From: Lytechinus pictus
Lineage: Eukaryota
DNA: 64,000 bases
NCBI RefSeq assembly: GCF_037042905.1
Contig: NC_087257.1
Coordinates: forward strand, 7,440,001 to 7,504,000
Reading direction: 5' to 3'
The notes beneath the pieces were generated by a model. The model did not search any database, had not been told where the DNA came from, and was given only the letters and a program-made list of their open reading frames with translations. Below, piece after piece: positions 3,151-63,049 of this stretch (the first letter of the stretch is position 1; the number at the start of each line of letters is the position of its first letter). Made by a program: the position numbers and the translations under genes.

Positions 3151-4097
3151 TTTACAGTTATTTTTCATAACGCCAAATGCCTTTCCATGCTCTGTTTATT
3201 TTCATCCGATTTTATGCAATCGACGCCCGAAACTTCATTTTGATTATTAATGTAGCATTACCTTTCCCTCTTCTCTAAGTACTGACCTTGGTATTTTCAG
3301 ATCGGATCTTCTTGCATGCATTGTCCAGCATGTTAGCAAGGACCGATACGCTCTAGTCAGCCGACCTAGATATATATATTTTATTTCTGAAAATTATAGA
3401 GGGTGGCACACATCACCAATTTGGTGGTCTTCATTGTGGCCCTGGTAACAAAGAGATCAACAAATAATATGAATAATGAAAATAATAGGTAGTTATAAAC
3501 AGGATATAATAGAGTAATAAACAAAATGCATGTAAACATGTTATTAGAAAAATTCTTGGGAATAATGTTAATTTGATAATCAACTGATAACTTGAATCAA
3601 ATTTGTGAATTTAGATTTGAAGTTAGAGCATACAATAATTTAACAAAAATTTGAACGAATAAGAAATTTCCAAATGGCGAATTCATGTTCAATTTGCATA
3701 TTGGTTTTTTGGCAGTCACAATTAAAACAGAAATAAGAAACAATGTGACCCACTGAAAGCGAATTGTCCGAATTAAGGGCTCTAATTGCATCCAACTTCC
3801 GGGGGAAAACCGCCGTGAACCGCCATTTAACCGACAATGTGAGATACCCCCTTAAGGTTTTCAACTCAAACATTCCGATAGGAATCCACACGTCAGACAC
3901 GCATTGACGGTTTAAGTGATATAGGGAATAAAATCGTCATAAACTCTCGCATTAGACAAAAAGATATTAGATCAAGATTATAAAATGACACAGGAATTCA
4001 TGATGACTCTTAGGATTTACTTTGTTGTTCCCGAATAAAATGCTACCTTTCTTATCAAATGTAATAATTTTTGCTATGAACTGAATGCAAAATACGT

Positions 4098-5331
4098 GTG
4101 TTCACTCAGTATGCCTTACCTTCTCTCAGATATTTGTTAACTGTACACAACTTGACTGATACACAACTCACCTCGCTTGATTCTATTCAGACTAGAATGC
4201 TGAAAAAATGGCTGAAAATTCCCAGTCACGGTGCAACGCCTTCCATATTGTACGCATCAAAGGGATTGAATATAAAAACATTATCAGAGTTGTATCTTGA
4301 GTGTCATACATTGTCTTTTGCCTCTACCTTGACCAAAGGTGATCCAAAGGTAAGGCATGCAGTAGAGTCGAAAATAGAAAGGGAAAGTAAATGGTCTAGT
4401 AAAAACAAGAAATTTGGCGTTAAAGTATCAATGAAAATGATGGAAACAGCAAGGGATACGAATAATGATGATTCACAACAATGGAAATCAATGAAAAGGG
4501 CAATTAAAAATGTAATCGTGAAAGAGAAAAACGATAACTGGTCAGAGCGTTTACAGAAGCTCGCAAAACAGGGTATCTTATTACATTTGTTAGAAGTAGA
4601 AAAAAGCGATCTTACGTGGAAAACAATTATGTATGGTTTACCCAGAGGTGTCCTAAGTTTTGCCTCGAGGGCTGCAATCGATAGCCTTCCAACTCCCCAA
4701 AATCTCAAGTTATGGGGTAAAAAGATGAATGAAAAATGTTGTCTATGCAATTGTACCGGCTCTTTGGTCCATATTTTAAATATGTGCACTGTTGTCCTTA
4801 CTCAAGGCAGATTTACATACCGACACAATAGCGTGTTAGGTTACCTTGCAAAGGAATTGAAAAGTTGTGCAGAAAGCAATGGCATAAGACTTGATTTGTA
4901 TGCTGACCTCCCAGGGATGAGAATTAATGGTGGTACAATCCCTTCTAATGTCATAGTCACCACAGAGAAACCAGATATAACTCTCTTTTTCCCAGAATCT
5001 ACCCCTCCAAAGATTGTACTCATTGAGTTGACAGTTCCTTTTGAACCTAATATTCGTAAGGCGAGAGAACGTAAGGAGGTGAGGTACGTTCAGCTGAATA
5101 GGGACATCATATCTAAGAATTGAGTCGCATCTGGTATTTTTTGAAGTCGGAAGTAGAGGGGTGGTTACCAGAGACAATAAACAGCAAATTAAGACAATTC
5201 TACACCACGTCGGTTCAAGGAAATACAAAGATGTTATCCTTACAATGAGTAAACTAGCACTAATTGGTTCATACGTGATCTACAATGCAAAGAGTGAACC
5301 ACAGTGGACCGACATGACACTTCTTCACTGA
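4098..5331 (+). mobile_element. 5'-truncated non-LTR retrotransposon with restriction-like endonuclease (HERO/NeSL-like)
   Basis: CCHC knuckle (C..C...HILNMC), RHNSVL, KPDI and IELTVPFE. After a frameshift near 5119 the frame continues FEVGSRG...SKLALIGSYVIYNAKSEPQW to TGA at 5329-5331. Confidence 0.88.
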
Positions 5332-12270: not shown

Positions 12271-12597
12271 CTGTATAAAAATTGAAAAGACAAAATTATA
12301 AACTCAAGACGAATTACTATTGTAGAGATGGATACATATGAAAAATGAAGTTCTATTTTAAAAATAGGGGAACAAGTCTTGGTTATAGATCATGATCGTG
12401 ATATTTCAGAAAATGACAGAGTTTACATGATCGATCCATATCATGAAAACATTTTTAAAGTTTTATTTTCTGTTTGTTTTCGGGGGATTTCTCGAACCTA
12501 GATGAAAAATTTTCTTTTTTTATATAAATATAATTTCATAGATATTAGGCATGAATTATAGCGACGATGAGAGTACATTATAAGAGTAAATCAGAAC

Positions 12598-13623
12598 CTT
12601 TCGCATATGATTTCAGGAGAGCATCCTTGAGGCCTATTGAATCGATTGCTTGAACATATCTCATGTGTGGCCAGACCCTCTTCATGATGCCTTCGAAACC
12701 CTTCTGGAACTCCTTCTTCAATTCTGTAGCTCTAGCCTTATCCCCTCCTCCAAGCTCCTTTACAAGTGCTCTATGAATGTCAGGTGGAACATTGGTTGTC
12801 GTCACGGTTCCAAGTTCAATGTCTCGAACAAACTCGGGCCATTGTTGCTCAACCATTCGCATTGCTGACATCAGGTTTGAAGTGAAATTGGCGTTGATGC
12901 TACGAAGGTTTGGATCACGGAGCCCGAAAAGAAGATGGACATAAACGGAATCAATAGGATCACTGATGTCGTAACCAACTGCAGGTGTTGAGTACAAAAA
13001 CAAGAGTCGTTTTAAGGTCTTAGTCATTACTGATGCAGGGGCCATCAAGACGCCGCCTTCTGAATGCCTTACCTTTGGTGCTGTATACATGTACAGCTCT
13101 CGTTGGAGACCGTCATGACCGAAACAGTTCGCCCTGACATCGAAGTGTATTCCAAATGCCCACTTGAAGAGATTCTTTTGATAGGCTTCAGTGTACGGCA
13201 CCATCTTAGCTTTTCCTGTGGTTCCGGAGGTGAGCGCGAACCGTATAACAGGGTCACCTGCCAACAAACCTGTTTCACCTTTCTCCAAACGATCTACGTA
13301 TGGCCTGTACCGTTCGTAGTCGGTTAATGTATGTTTCTTCCTCAAGTCCGCCAAAGATGTTACTGAAAAGAGTCCAAAGTCTTTTGAGTATTCGGATTGC
13401 GCATTTGCCTTGATGATGTCTTTCAGATATTCTTCCTGTGATTTCCTGGGGTTCTTCCAGGCCTTCTTGCACTTCCAAACCACAGGGAAACGGGTCACAA
13501 AAAGGATTGATATAATGGTAATATGGAGGTAGGATGAGACAAGCCCATGTCCGTGGGATATGTGCAATGTTGACATCCAAAGTGATAGAACGGTCACCAA
13601 GATACTCGGAACACCAAACAAGC
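12598..13623 (-). CDS. GHDC: GH3 domain-containing protein, large coding exon (hydrophobic N-terminus plus P-loop TSGTTGKAK)
   Basis: 1026-nt open exon, acceptor ttttctcttttccag| and donor AAG|gttctg. Contains QEEYL..I...NA.SEY, LTDYERYRPY and FALTSGTTGKAK. First in-frame ATG at 13576; the upstream exon is unresolved. Confidence 0.95.
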
Positions 13624-14141
13624 CTGGAAAAGAGAAAAATACTATGCAGTTACATTAAAATTAACTTGCATTGAAGCCTTTTCACACATATTTTGCTCCA
13701 AAATTTGAGCTATACCCACGCGCGTCCACACATTTGGAAATGAACGTGAATGAAAGTAATCTACCTTATTTCGGAAAAAAATACCTCTAAGATGGCCTAA
13801 AACCCGTATCGTCACAAAAGCCAAGGATAGGTGACTTAAATCCCTAGAAGTAAAACAAAAAAAGTTTGCCTAGTTAAAGTACTCAAAACGCCGAAAACAG
13901 TATTTGAAGCTGAAAACATCCCCTTTTTAAGGAAACATCAAACATGTCAAAGTGATAAAGATACACTATAAAAGTGCCCACTGCTCAGTGCCCCCCCCCC
14001 CCCGACATCCCCACCCCGGGTGCAAGTCATGAGCAGTTTACGTCATGTTTTGGCATAGGATGCGAAGAAATGTTATTGTGTATTTTTGAATCTGTATTCG
14101 TTCATGAACACATAAATAGCAGAGAAGTTAACTGCTAAAAC

Positions 14142-44026: not shown

Positions 44027-46410
44027 GTGTCAGGAACAAACTTGGACTCCACAAATTTCCACCTAAACAACTGATTTCATATACTTTTTAACTCAAGTTT
44101 AATGCCTCATGAAAATAATTGTCACTCACATTTACAAGACTAAACTCACGTAGCGAAAATTGTATCAAGTAATCAAGTATTTTCCAAACATTTCATACAC
44201 TGAAGTCAAATGTAGGATTACATGCAATCTATTGAACATTATATGGAACATCCCAACCAACTGAATTCAGTTATGCAAATATATGAATCGACAATCTTTG
44301 AGTACAGGTATAAAGTATGAGTATGAATAAAATAACAAAAATATCATAATACTGTTCATAAGTGGTAGCAAAGTCTTGTAGGCCCAACAGTCCTACTTTA
44401 TCACGTTATAGTTATGCAGATGTATTCCAGTTTAGAATATCAGATTGAACGAACCATTAGCTGGGTGCGTGAAGAAAACAGACGATGGGCAAACAAACCC
44501 CAGTCACACAGAGCTAGTCCAGCAATTCCCGATTCACACAGGTACGATAATCTTCTCATAGAACGTTGAATGCACCACCCAAGCTCGTGATCCGGGTCAC
44601 GCACATGAGTGCAAGCTGGTAAGGTCAAATCCCCCAAATCCCTCTTTGAAGAGGAGTCACCTGAAATAGTATAAGCGACGTTTACCATAGTAATTGCATA
44701 GACAATGATTTGTGATTAACACATACAAGTCATAGACGTATTCGTAGGTACTGCCCGTCTCTTCGTGCTGGAATTCACCTATCCACAGCTCCTTTAGGAG
44801 GGTGAGAGGTACACGGACAAGTCTGCTATAGATCAACTCAAACGGCGAGAAACCTAAGCTTGCCTGCGGGGCCTCACGATAGGTGAAAAGCAGTGCTCCA
44901 AGGTATCGATCCCAGTCACTTGGTTTCTCTGCACACATTCAGCGGAACATCATCTTCAATGTTCCGTTGAATCTTTCCACCAACCCGTGATCCTTTGTCA
45001 CTCAAAATTTCCTGTGGCACACCAATACGAGAAAAAATATCTACAAGAGCATCAACAATGGTTACTGCTTCACTATTTTCCATAGCAACTGCGTTAGGGT
45101 ACCGGGTGGCAAAATCTACTAGGGTTAGTATGTGCTTGTTGCCTCAAGATGTCCGTGGTTCTGTAGGACCCACAATGTCTACAGCTACACGTTTGAATGG
45201 CGTGACGATAATGGGCATGGCACCCAATTTAACTTTCTGCACTCTTCCTTTTGGATAGGTTCTTTGGCAAATGTCACATGATTGGACGAAGCGAGATATA
45301 TCCCCAATAATACCCGGCCCGTAGAAATTTCTCAATATTCGGTCAGAGGTCTCCTTGATTCCTTGATGACTACCAAGGAGTGATTCACGTGCTATCTTAA
45401 TCACTTGCCTGCGAAGTGATGTTGATGGAAGGACTATCTGCATATCAGTTAGATCAGTACTGGGGTCTTTGTAATCCATGTACAGCATCACCTTTTCCAC
45501 AAGAAACCGTGATACAGATCTCACTTTACTAACCTTAGGATCACTGTCTTGTGCTAGCTGGAAGCAACGACTTAGGGAGGAGTCAGACTGTTGCTCGCTT
45601 TGTAGGGACTGTACATTCACCACATCGGTAATAGGAGGAGGTACTTTCAGAGGTTAAATTGGTCTGTCAGTCCCTGCTTTCTGGGCTCTGGTCTGTACAG
45701 CTTGAGCCTGGTCGAGTGAATCAGCCGACGGGTGCTTGGTTGCTCTATTTCAGATGTTGAGTAGTCAGGCTTCCACTCTGGGTCTGGGTCTGTTGGGCGG
45801 GGACGCCTCTTATGTTCCCTTAAACAAGATCATAAATCTGTTTTTTTTACACATAGAGCAGGAACATCGCCCCTATAAAATGGGGGTATCAACGTGAACA
45901 CGTGCTACTGGGATCTTTCTGACTGTGCGGTCAATCAACACACGAACCCTGATCTCACCGGTCAGTTGGTCCTCGCATGGACAAGGCCCTTTCGGATAAC
46001 TCCGCTACATCCACTATCTCTGAGGACTTTAACTGGCTGTTTACCAACAAAACCCGTAACTACTGGCATGTCCTCGGAGTTCCTCTCCCCACATGCTGCA
46101 GACAATATAGGAAGTTGGTGACCGCATCTCAGTGTTACTCAGTCTAAATCAAAACAGCAACCTTTTTTTTTTACCTTTTCAGGAAAAGCACAAAAAGCGA
46201 CAACATCCTGTTCAGGATGTGTCAGGTTATTGTTTGTCGAAGGACGATTAGGAGTCGCCAGGCTGAGCTTCCTATCAGGTTGGCAGAATTGGGAGAATGT
46301 TGATCTCATCGCTTCAACATAATGCTCAGCCAGCTGCCCAAGCTCTTCAAGTGTTGTCACGCTGCGTTCCTTTAAAAAAATCAACAGATCTGAACAACAT
46401 TTGATTAAAT

Positions 46411-48285
46411 CGTCGGCGGTCATCCGAACTGTCTTATCGCATATACGACGGTGCAAACCCGTTTTAGAGAAACTCGACTTCAAAGTTAACTATAATTTTC
46501 ACACTTAGTTCCCCGGCCTTACAACATATTCATTGCTAGAAAAAAAAAAGGTTGGAAAGAGCAAGACAATTGCTTGACATTGGTATTGGTATTTTTTTTG
46601 AAAAAACAAGGATCCGAGAAAATATCGCAAAAGAGCTACATGCTTGTAATTTCGGTTTGAGTGGCTTAGATTTTCCATGTACAAAAAGGCCGTAGAGAAA
46701 AAGCGATACGACGTTTTGACTGACCGCGATTTCAATGCGCGCGATCAGTCAAAACTTCGTATCGCTTTTCACGTGCAAAGTCAATGCAGTGCCCAGTGCC
46801 GATACGACGCATTGACATCGCGGTCAGTCAAAACGTCGTATCGCTCTGTTACAGTACACGTTTCCAATGGGATTTGCGCATTTTATTAAAAGTTTGCATA
46901 ACACCGCCGTGAAAATCCTCTCATATCTCAAAAAATAAAATAAATAACTACCTAGAAATTTGGTTACGAATAGAGTAGGACTTGTACTGTCAATTTCTGC
47001 AAAAATCTCAAAATCGATTTTTGGACCAAAATTGACTGATACGGCGCACAGTGGGCCAGAATGAGTTGAAAGTGCGCCAAAATTATATTCCGTGTTAGAT
47101 TTTTACTTTAATATGTTGATAACGGGTAATTTTGGGCGTAGAATCGACTGAACATAATCTAAAGCCGATTTGACGTCACCTTGATACCAAATTTTGATTG
47201 GCTACTTAAAACCTATCTGTGAAGACAAATTACGCTAGACAATGTGTAGTATATAAATTTGTGTTATGTGCTACTTTAAGATTGACCAGAGTGAATGTTG
47301 GTTTAGGCTTCTCACATGCCTAAAAAGTGTGTATGAGATCCTGAAAATAATTTTATGGCATCAAAATGATCATTAATTAGATTTATAAAAAGAAAAAATA
47401 AAATCTGAAAAATATTAACCGTGCTTTATGAAGCTGTGTTGACTTGTGTAAAATGCAGTGTATATAGCACCAAGAATGTATCACTATGAGGAGGGTTTTT
47501 GGCTGAAATTATTCTACAAGTAAGTTTTAACTCTGGAAGAGTTGTGGGTATAGCCCTTATTTGCGTTAGCAACCTTTATTTTGTTTACATTTTGCCCGGA
47601 ATTCATGTCATTTTCATGGAATGGAAGGGGAATCGTCCTCGCCGTGCAAAAGCGAACGGCAATGTACACCCATACGGTGCGCTACGATGACTGCGCGGTA
47701 TAAAATGACCGTTTTTGAACAGGTTTTGGGGGTGTTGTGTCAAGTAAAATCGGCTCTCAAATGGCAACGGGCAAAAACGGGCAGCTAAATTTGGTATTGT
47801 CTTAAAGCTTAGACATCAGAAAAAATGATGATGATAGAAATTAGACGGAAATCCAAACGTTTCTAATGTAAATGCAAAAAACATGGATTTTCAGCCTATT
47901 TCGAGGAATAATCATACTATAAACCTCCTGAAAGGTGTCTTTTATCTACTTTGAACCCTTTCACACACAAAAAAAAATATATCAGGATTATGTTGGAGCC
48001 ATTTCAGATTCCTACATGAAAAACCTCCTGGGAAATTGCCTGTTTTTCAACTAGGTTGTCATATACGCGACATGTCGCAAAATGTCACATTTTACGATTT
48101 GAGGTTGGAAATTAACAACCTTTATGCAAATTTCGGAATGAAATATTTTGCTGAAGTATTCTTCAAAGTGTTGTCTTTCAATTGGGCATAACAAAAAATA
48201 AAAATCTAAAATTGCCCAAAATGACTTTTGGCGCACTTTTGTTTCGCCCCGGCCCACTGTGCGGCGGTTCGGATGATCGTCGACG
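46411..48285. mobile_element. Sola1-like non-autonomous element inserted in the Gypsy gag
   Basis: TIR CGTCG(G/A)CG(G/A)TCATCCGAAC with 4-bp TSD AAAT (AWWT type). Removing it restores the gag frame REQYLIKCC. Internal palindrome at about 46700-46845. Confidence 0.75.
47047..48261. mobile_element. Non-autonomous Transib/RAG-like DNA transposon with RSS-like ends
   Basis: Both ends begin CACAGTGGGCC and share AAAGTGCGCCAAAA further in; perfect 5-bp GC-rich TSD CGGCG (47042-47046 and 48262-48266). No transposase ORF. Confidence 0.9.
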
Positions 48286-49713
48286 AAATATTGCTCACGT
48301 ATCATTATATTTTTCAATTTTTAGAAGTTGGTACCAATGCTAGCAAATTTTACCCATTTATCAAGTAAATTCTCTCATCTGAGAATAAATTCATGAGAGT
48401 TTTCATCTTTTTCTGGTCTAGCATTGCGAAATTTCTTGCGGAAGCCTTCCTCTGTCAAGTTAAAACGAGTAAAGAGGGCTTCTTTCAATAATGATCTTGG
48501 GAATTCCTTGCAGGCTACCTAGCATATACCTGCAAGGCCTTGTCAGAGAGCAGAGCATACTTCTCGAACCGGAGGATATAACTATCAAGATCATCATTTT
48601 CCTCATTGAATATGGGCAATTTAGGCACTTTAGGTTTTGTATCAGGTAATGTTTCCTCATTCTCAATTCTAGAGTCAGAGAGTTTTGTTTTGAGTTCCAG
48701 AATAGCGATTTCATTTCGTTTCAATTCCAGTAAATGCACTCGCTCTTCTCTTTTTTTTTTATAATTCTGTTTTTATTAAAAAATTTAGAAAATCACAATA
48801 TTTACAAGAATTATTGCATAATTAAAGTACAAAATCAAGGTAACAAGAAAATAAAATGAATGACTGCAGAACAAAGATTTTAAAAATCTCTCATTCAAGG
48901 ATGAATTTCGTATTGGATTTAAGCCCTAAAGAAATACACTTCCCTTTCTTTGGTGTGCACAACCTCTTTGAAACAGATTATGGACTAGTATAGCTGATGC
49001 AGGGCCGCGTTGCGATCCACAAACATACCTTCCACATGCACACAACACAGCAACATTCTCGCTCCCCGCCCCCCTCTCTCTTTCACTCTCTCCCTCTCTC
49101 ACTCACTTACTCACTCTCCATAAAAATACATCGCTCGCAAAGACTTTGATTTAGAAAATCGCACCGCGGCCCAATCTCATCAGATCCAGTAGCACTGATC
49201 AAGAAATTACGTACGTGCACCATGCACGAAAACCTGCCCGGAGTCTGCTGACTGTCTATCTCTTACAAATACAAACATGGATATAACAATGACGATCGCC
49301 TTTTATATATATAAAATCGCCTTGTATATATAAATTGTTGCTTAATCATGATAATAGAAAAAGATATGGTTTAGATAGAAGAGATTCAAATTTAAGATAC
49401 CTTTTGTAAGATAAATGGAAAATAGAATAATTACAAACAAGAATTGAAAATGCCAGATAAGAGATTCTGGAAAAAATCTTAAATGTATTGTGATGTTTAT
49501 GACATATGAATTATGAATAAATCCCTCATTTCGAGGTACAAACAAGTGTCGATTTAGAGAGTGTATCATGTAGAACGTGTTTCAAATGTTAAAATGCACA
49601 TATTTTGTTATTTATACATACATAAGGACATTAGTCCTTAGGTCGTTTTGTCCACACGTGGTCATTTGTACGCAAGATTCCGCCAATGGTGTCATTAGAT
49701 CCTGGGCGACTGC

Positions 49714-49925
49714 TTGGTTCCCCGTGATGGTGACACGACATTGGCTCCGGCGGCAATTGCTAGGGGCTTTATTTCGTCCAGGGTATATAGGGCTAGGGTT
49801 GCAATAGGGTTTTACGTTAGGTTAAGGGTAAAGTTTAGAATAGGGTACAGTTATAAATCTAGGGTTGAAGTTAGTCATTCCAGTATTGCGTGGAATTGTC
49901 GCCGGAGCAAATGTCATGGAACCAA
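49714..49925. repeat. Small palindromic repeat with TAGGGT-rich core
   Basis: Inverted GACATTGGCTCCGGCGGCAATT / AATTGTCGCCGGAGCAAATGTC flanking degenerate (T)AGGGTT units. Confidence 0.65.
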
Positions 49926-62910: not shown

Positions 62911-63049
62911 NNNNNNNNNNNNNNNNNNNNNNNNNNNNNNNNNNNNNNNNNNNNNNNNNNNNNNNNNNNNNNNNNNNNNNNNNNNNNNNNNNNNNNNNNN
63001 NNNNNNNNNNNNNNNNNNNNNNNNNNNNNNNNNNNNNNNNNNNNNNNNN
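62911..63049. other. Assembly gap
   Basis: Run of N. Confidence 1.

Follow-up and report, generated by a model that had tools for sequence, protein, structure and literature searches.

Transib transposons end in 38-bp terminal inverted repeats (TIRs) in which a CACAATG heptamer is separated by a variable spacer of 23 bp from an A-rich nonamer, AAAAAAATC; CAC at positions 1–3 and the A residues at nonamer positions 5 and 6 (positions 34 and 35 of the TIR) are conserved (Kapitonov and Jurka 2005, PMC1131882). Most Transib families carry RSS23-like signals at both ends, generate target-site duplications (TSDs) of 5 bp and insert into GC-rich targets; 12/23-like ends are the exception, being found in Transib5, Transib2_AG and TransibN1-3_AG (PMC1131882). 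In a later classification, the TIRs of subgroup I of the superfamily are asymmetric, and those of subgroup II may be of either kind (PMC9435367). Among sea urchins, Transib1_SP of the purple sea urchin is flanked by CGGCG, and a non-autonomous relative, TransibN1_SP, has also been described (PMC1131882). Transibs with intact TIRs are present in many echinoderms, and no intact RAG-like (RAGL) element that is predicted to be able to transpose has been found in this phylum (PMC10629977). RAG-like transposons also have TIRs that begin with a CAC heptamer, as well as 5-bp TSDs; their TIR consensus, CACTWMCAAACKTYKBB, includes a conserved AAA at positions 8–10 (TR2), and similarity lies within about 13–17 terminal base pairs (PMC7204232). 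The origin of the 12/23 rule itself is debated, with the 'Transib seed' idea (PMC8355894) standing against an origin from RAGL-A (PMC10629977).

The stretch of echinoid DNA analysed here (64,000 nucleotides, referred to as the window) harbors one element with ends of this general type, delimited as follows.

47047–48261, no strand assigned: whole non-autonomous element, 1,215 bp
47042–47046, no strand assigned: left copy of the TSD, CGGCG, 5 bp, identical to 48262–48266
48262–48266, no strand assigned: right copy of the TSD, CGGCG, 5 bp, identical to 47042–47046

The left heptamer is CACAGTG at 47047–47053, and the right heptamer, CACTGTG at 48255–48261, reads CACAGTG on the minus strand. The two CGGCG copies that flank them (47042–47046 and 48262–48266) are identical at five of five positions and GC-rich, so that both the heptamers and the TSD claimed in the initial annotation are borne out. 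Within the window, this is the only CACAGTG…CACTGTG pair, separated by up to 6 kb, that has identical 5-bp flanks, whereas 0.003 such pairs are expected by chance on average from block shuffles of the 64 kb. Furthermore, a 36-bp two-block pattern describing the ends occurs at two sites in the window, namely the two ends of the element, with zero expected. No further copy of the element was detected in the window, either with the end patterns (allowing up to three mismatches) or by blastn with the element and its flanks. Scans of viral contigs and a first scan of genome contigs with the end pattern gave no match, and a literature search for the end sequence CACAGTGGGCC retrieved unrelated primers and guide sequences only. 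A second genome contig scan, for which we estimate about one chance match, returned two matches in bacterial MAGs; these have spacings of 16 and 13, lack GGCC, and were dismissed as chance.

The heptamer is short, and with six forward and three reverse copies in the window, two of them might conceivably have come to face each other by chance, with no mobile element involved. Such a coincidence is vanishingly unlikely: beyond the low number of flank-matched pairs expected (0.003), 14 further bases are identical in register at the two ends, three independent metagenome contigs have related elements with these same ends, and the host into which the element inserted regains its TIR once the element is removed. 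The 1,215-bp element is a well-preserved transposon copy and not a chance pair of heptamers.

The architecture of the two ends, each read inward, comprises the following parts.

47047–47084, plus strand: left 38-bp TIR, identical to the right end at positions 1–11 and 23–36; heptamer CACAGTG (47047–47053), GGCC (47054–47057), variable spacer AGAATGAGTTG (47058–47068) and conserved block AAAGTGCGCCAAAA (47069–47082)
48224–48261, minus strand: right 38-bp TIR, identical at 37 of 38 positions to the end of a metagenome copy (L003, see below); heptamer (48255–48261), GGCC (48251–48254), spacer GGGGCGAAACA (48240–48250) and conserved block (48226–48239)
47095–47109, plus strand: left subterminal inverted-repeat block TTAGATTTTTACTTT, at positions 49–63 from the left end
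48195–48209, minus strand: right subterminal inverted-repeat block, at positions 53–67 from the right end, partner of 47095–47109

When the two ends are aligned without gaps, identity is 11 of 11 over positions 1–11 (CACAGTGGGCC), 3 of 11 over positions 12–22 (AGAATGAGTTG on the left versus GGGGCGAAACA on the right), and 14 of 14 over positions 23–36 (AAAGTGCGCCAAAA). Of the nine mismatches in the 38-bp alignment, eight thus fall within the 11-bp spacer; the probability of such clustering is about 3e-5 if the stretch is fixed and about 8e-4 if any stretch is allowed. As the mismatches are concentrated in this middle stretch, the ends are bipartite, with heptamer and GGCC separated by a spacer from a distal block, and are alike on both sides. 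Because positions 1–11 and 23–36 are identical in an ungapped register, both ends carry the A-rich CCAAAA after a 23-bp spacer. The subterminal inverted block, TTAGATTTTTA, lies 4 bp farther in at the right end than at the left. Read as its reverse complement, TTTTGGCGCACTTT, the conserved TIR block (47069–47082 and 48226–48239) includes TTTGGCGC, which matches the E2F-site consensus, TTTSSCGC; this match is probably incidental.

The initial annotation had also read the ends as an asymmetric, 12/23-like pair, and each of the spacer and nonamer motifs that it quoted is present at the spacing given. At the right end, CACAGTG is followed by GGCCGGGGCGAA (12 bp) and then by ACAAAAGTG, which matches the nonamer ACAAAAACC at six of nine positions; at a 23-bp spacer, the same end has CCAAAAGTC, also six of nine. 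The corresponding motifs at the left end are TTGAAAGTG (three of nine) at a 12-bp spacer and CCAAAATTA (five of nine) at a 23-bp spacer. Taken on their own, these nonamer matches are weak evidence: 9-mers that match ACAAAAACC at six or more positions begin at 1.8% of window positions, and those matching at five or more at 7.3%. What was read as a '12-bp nonamer' on the right consists of three spacer bases and the first part of the shared block AAAGTGCGCCAAAA; the left end departs from it at three bases only, those at positions 20–22. On both sides, the distal block AAAGTGCGCCAAAA contains the A-tract behind the '23-bp nonamer'. A 12/23 pair would be characterized by unlike heptamer–nonamer distances at its two ends, whereas here the 14-bp block occupies positions 23–36 on both sides. 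The two ends are therefore geometrically symmetric, both being RSS23-like, with the sequence of the spacer as almost their sole difference, and they do not form a 12/23 pair.

The same two blocks, at the same spacing, recur in three related ends (L001, L002 and L003) that come from marine or estuarine metagenomes. The first two, both on JGI metagenome contigs, were retrieved by a metagenome scan in which both blocks were forced and 9–13 bp were allowed between them; conservation of the blocks in these two is hence circular, and it is their spacing and their spacer sequences that are informative. In each of the two, the blocks are exactly 11 bp apart, the spacers being AGGACTGAGCA and AGGAGTGAGTA, respectively. 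They represent the same end of one family related to that in the window, and are 87% identical to each other over 364 bp. A search for a second end in L001 found none. By contrast, L003, an 813-bp contig from the Tara Oceans marine metagenome, was found independently of the TIR: the reading frame spanning the right end, used as the query of a homology search, returned one protein of 114 amino acids. With 83% identity to the element over 546 bp, L003 represents another copy of its family, and the L003 end differs from the right TIR at one of 38 positions, in the spacer, where ACAAAAGTG is changed to ACCAAAGTG. L003 also retains the right-end position of the subterminal block. Identity between L003 and the right end of the element declines inward as follows.

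Positions 1–38: 97%
Positions 39–100: 95%
Positions 101–300: 82%
Positions 301–535: 78%

Greater conservation of termini than of the interior is the usual pattern for termini that are recognized by a transposase. Farther in, the element shares a module with both L003 and L002.

47756–47822, minus strand: internal module, about 440–506 bp from the right end, common to L003 and L002 at the same distance (about 440–525 bp from the end over all three)

The local alignment score for this module in the window is 40, compared with a shuffle mean of 21.6 (s.d. 2.3), and that between L003 and L002 is 69, compared with a shuffle mean of 22.7. Since the module is equidistant from the end on the right side of the element, in L003 and in L002, the L002 end corresponds in position to the right end. 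The L002 spacer, however, resembles the left spacer of the element; a counterpart of the right end thus has a left-like spacer, and spacer sequence drifts between related families while its length is fixed.

Considering the two ends in the window together with those of L001, L002 and L003, the distance from heptamer to block is identical in all five. All five also have the heptamer CACAGTG, GGCC at positions 8–11, CAC at positions 1–3 and AA at positions 34–35, and are identical at positions 23–36, with AAAA at 33–36 (the block having been forced by the search pattern in L001 and L002). Between families, spacers vary and blocks are kept, although two of the three additional ends came from a pattern that fixes the blocks; within the family, the terminal 100 bp are kept, spacer included, as is evident from the 37 of 38 TIR positions shared with L003. 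The proposed asymmetric 12/23-like ends are not supported by this comparison, the shared block lying in the same register at both ends of the element and its spacing being fixed in five ends. The initial annotation had named, as the outcome that would count against its reading, simple symmetric TIRs with the asymmetry being decay private to this copy. As regards geometry, symmetric TIRs are essentially what is found, with one left end examined; the spacer difference between left and right is not private decay, because the right-end spacer is conserved in L003. Two features of L001 lie outside this comparison. An unrelated short repeat (…GACACGACATTTGCTCCG…) at 1381–1412 is 91–92% alike to window positions 49730–49761 and 49894–49918, and suggests that L001 comes from a related (echinoderm) genome. 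At about 600–1060, L001 has an array of palindromic units based on TTCCACGAAGTGACACATCG and CGATGTGTCACTTCGTGGAA, which is absent from L002 and from the element in the window.

The ends might nonetheless be functionally asymmetric, with ACAAAAGTG acting as a 12-type signal on the right, CCAAAATTA as a 23-type signal on the left, and a transposase that would favor left/right pairs. The two spacers do truly differ, and conservation of the right one in L003, the higher score of the 12-bp nonamer on the right (six of nine versus three of nine on the left), the deeper position of the subterminal block on the right (by 4 bp) and the precedent of a few Transib families with 12/23-like ends are all in keeping with such behavior. 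This reading is highly improbable, given that positions 23–36 are identical and in the same register at both ends, and that the 23-spaced block is also present at the right end, where it even scores better than on the left (six of nine versus five of nine). The motif at the 12-bp position, moreover, becomes ACCAAAGTG in L003, GCAAAAGTG in L001 and GTAAAAGTG in L002 (the positional counterpart of the right end), and a six-of-nine nonamer match occurs at 1.8% of random positions. The small chance that we do allow for asymmetric behavior derives from the better A-tract at the 12-bp position of the right end and from the 4-bp subterminal offset. Each end has two A-tracts about one helical turn apart, at positions 21–25 or 23–25 and at positions 33–36, which lie inside and beside the block AAAGTGCGCCAAAA. 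Each TIR could accordingly present both a 12-type and a 23-type nonamer position, with the better 12-type tract on the right biasing the ends towards left/right pairing, but we consider this very unlikely as well. Were such a pairing bias to be real, the family would be a deuterostome Transib that stands between symmetric and 12/23-type ends.

The geometrically symmetric, RSS23-like ends can be compared with those of several known systems. The closest by description, as opposed to sequence comparison, are Transib1_SP and TransibN1_SP (PMC1131882), which share with the element an echinoid host, ends with a CAC heptamer, TIRs of about 38 bp and an A-rich block that a spacer of about 23 bp sets apart from the heptamer. 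The TSD of Transib1_SP, CGGCG, is the same 5-bp, GC-rich sequence as that of the element, and the short non-coding body resembles TransibN1_SP. The heptamer differs in being the RSS form, CACAGTG, rather than the superfamily consensus CACAATG. Transib5 from D. melanogaster and Transib2_AG and TransibN1-3_AG from A. gambiae have a heptamer, an A-rich distal element and a 5-bp TSD as in the element; however, their 5′ ends are RSS12-like and their 3′ ends RSS23-like, whereas in the element the same block is located at the same distance at both ends. The resemblance to the 12RSS and 23RSS of V(D)J recombination extends to the heptamer CACAGTG, the A-tract, the A's at nonamer positions 5 and 6 and a spacer of 23 (or 22) bp. 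In contrast to those signals, the ends of the element have no length asymmetry and match the nonamer at only five or six of nine positions; the RSSs of V(D)J recombination flank gene segments, whereas the signals of the element are the ends of a transposon with a TSD. Lastly, the TIRs of ProtoRAG, RAGL-A and RAGL-B have a CAC heptamer and a 5-bp TSD, as does the element, but in RAGL TIRs the A-rich TR2 follows directly after the heptamer and conservation extends over about 15–17 bp, whereas the element has GGCC in that place and a distal block.

The element encodes nothing itself and is non-autonomous. The longest open reading frame (ORF) touching it comprises 88 amino acids and starts in the flank, and Pfam searches with six of the longest reading-frame pieces of the element gave no match even at E values up to 1, and hence no transposase remnant. 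An exact-protein look-up of an internal ORF gave no record, and a homology search with a mid-element reading frame returned no candidates. Another mid-element frame, when searched against a representative library, matched three long tandem-repeat proteins in many stretches at 30–34% identity; these were rejected as spurious. Rfam and tRNA scans of 46000–49500 gave sub-threshold matches only. Across the window, none of 85 stop-to-stop segments of at least 85 amino acids had a RAG1 or Transib domain according to Pfam, and neither a transposase nor a RAG1L–RAG2L partner was seen within the 64 kb. The initial annotation of a short non-autonomous element of Transib or RAG-like type holds, in view of its CAC heptamer, its 38-bp TIRs that include a second conserved block, its perfect GC-rich 5-bp TSD and the lack of any ORF longer than 88 amino acids.

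As no transposase is seen in the window, assignment to Transib or to RAG-like transposons is made from the features of the ends. The element has every Transib feature that was looked for, namely a 5-bp TSD, a CAC heptamer, a TIR of about 38 bp with a spacer of about 23 bp and an A-rich block, and GC-rich targets. Concerning the latter, the targets of four independent insertions are CGGCG, CGGCC, CGACG and ATACG, a small sample, to be set against the 38% GC content of the window. Descent from a RAG-like transposon (RAG1L–RAG2L, of ProtoRAG type) would also account for the CAC heptamer and the 5-bp TSD (PMC7204232), and is favored by the presence of RAG1L and RAG2L genes in echinoderms (PMC10629977) as well as by the exact RSS form of the heptamer, CACAGTG. 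Positions 8–10, where TR2 has AAA, are GGC in the element, and its second conserved block is at 23–36; in addition, Transibs with intact TIRs are common in echinoderms, whereas no transposition-competent RAGL element has been found there (PMC10629977). These points make a RAG-like derivation improbable, and in all likelihood the 1,215-bp element is a non-autonomous (passenger) member of the Transib superfamily with symmetric ends in an echinoid genome.

A passenger of this kind would depend for its movement on a Transib transposase supplied in trans, a DDE enzyme resembling the RAG1 core and encoded at another site in the genome. Such an enzyme would presumably bind the 38-bp ends through the heptamer CACAGTG and the block at positions 23–36, including the A-tract at 33–36, cut at the border of the heptamer in a nick–hairpin reaction, and reinsert the element into a GC-rich target with a 5-bp stagger, in this case CGGCG. 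The steps of binding, cleavage and reinsertion are modeled on what has been published for Transibs (PMC1131882, PMC4840297); the symmetry of the bipartite ends, their constant spacing, the perfect GC-rich 5-bp duplication, the conserved terminal 100 bp, the nested position and the absence of coding capacity are direct observations.

The element lies within another element with TIRs, which in turn interrupts an ORF. The two parts of this host are as follows.

46421–47046, no strand assigned: left portion, and the bulk, of the 635-bp host TIR element, starting with CATCCGAAC
48267–48275, no strand assigned: last 9 bp of the host TIR element, GTTCGGATG; the Transib-type insertion is at bases 10–14 of the host right TIR

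If the Transib-type element is excised in silico together with one TSD copy, GTTCGGATG comes to adjoin the left flank, and the result is a 635-bp element beginning at 46421, whose restored ends, CATCCGAACTGTCTTATC and CATCCGAACCGCCGTATC, pair at 15 of 18 positions. The minus-strand ORF, which runs from about 48772 down to 46142, is interrupted and present in two pieces, 46142–46420 and 48276–48772, with the peptides …PKLPIFNEENDDLDSYILRFEKYA… / …IMIREQYF… / …LIKCCSDLLIFLKERSVTTLEELGQLAEHYVEA…. When both nested insertions are removed, this ORF is back in frame, with …IMIREQYF… followed by …DDLIKCCSDLLIFLKER…. The step-wise excisions therefore establish the order of arrival as the ORF-bearing element, the 635-bp TIR element and the Transib-type element. 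The latter, being innermost, is the latest insertion at the locus, and the earlier suggestion that it is the youngest layer is upheld in relative terms, its excision restoring the host TIR. The interrupted minus-strand ORF gives the impression of a retrotransposon gag, and a Pfam search with this flanking ORF detected no gag domain.

The host itself is MITE-like, its ends CATCCGAAC…GTTCGGATG (15/18 over 18 bp) being inserted in the minus-strand ORF. Its borders display a direct repeat matching at nine of ten positions; the left copy, ATCGTCGGCG, is separated from CATCCGAAC by 2 nt (GT), and the right copy, ATCGTCGACG, immediately follows GTTCGGATG. It also contains a palindrome at window positions 46699–46845, with 38-nt arms that are 97% complementary and a nested 30-nt pair. 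The match of this palindrome to an Rfam miRNA precursor, MIR1513, is below threshold (34.6 bits, compared with a gathering score of 95), so that it is probably just a hairpin.

Other features of the window include the remains of retroelements: an integrase H2C2 zinc domain at 45147–45653 on the minus strand (E value 1e-14), a reverse transcriptase at 1544–2254 on the plus strand (E value 2e-11) and a weak zf-RVT match at 4080–5120 on the plus strand (E value 5e-5), which is below the Pfam threshold with 24.4 bits compared with a cut-off of 27.5. An ORF of at least 347 amino acids at about 12581–13654 on the minus strand belongs to the GH3 family (acyl-acid amido synthetase-like), the closest named relatives of its part at 12581–13621 being from Strongylocentrotus purpuratus (61% identity) and Diadema antillarum (53%), compared with 34% for a sea cucumber protein; these relatives identify the window as sea urchin DNA. 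It is 72% identical to a Logan protein, an exact-protein look-up gave no record for it, and another ORF segment of the window has a match to the GH3 central domain. A run of 139 N at 62911–63049 is either an assembly gap or masked sequence.

A deuterostome Transib with true 12/23-type ends would bear on the source of the 12/23 rule in V(D)J recombination. The evidence points away from such ends and towards the common symmetric, RSS23-like layout of Transib, and other Transib families are already known to have asymmetric ends (PMC1131882, PMC9435367). With the same layout at both ends, the element is an ordinary member of a kind that has been described in sea urchins since 2005. It opens no new question; its value lies in repeat annotation and in providing a clean case of nested insertions.
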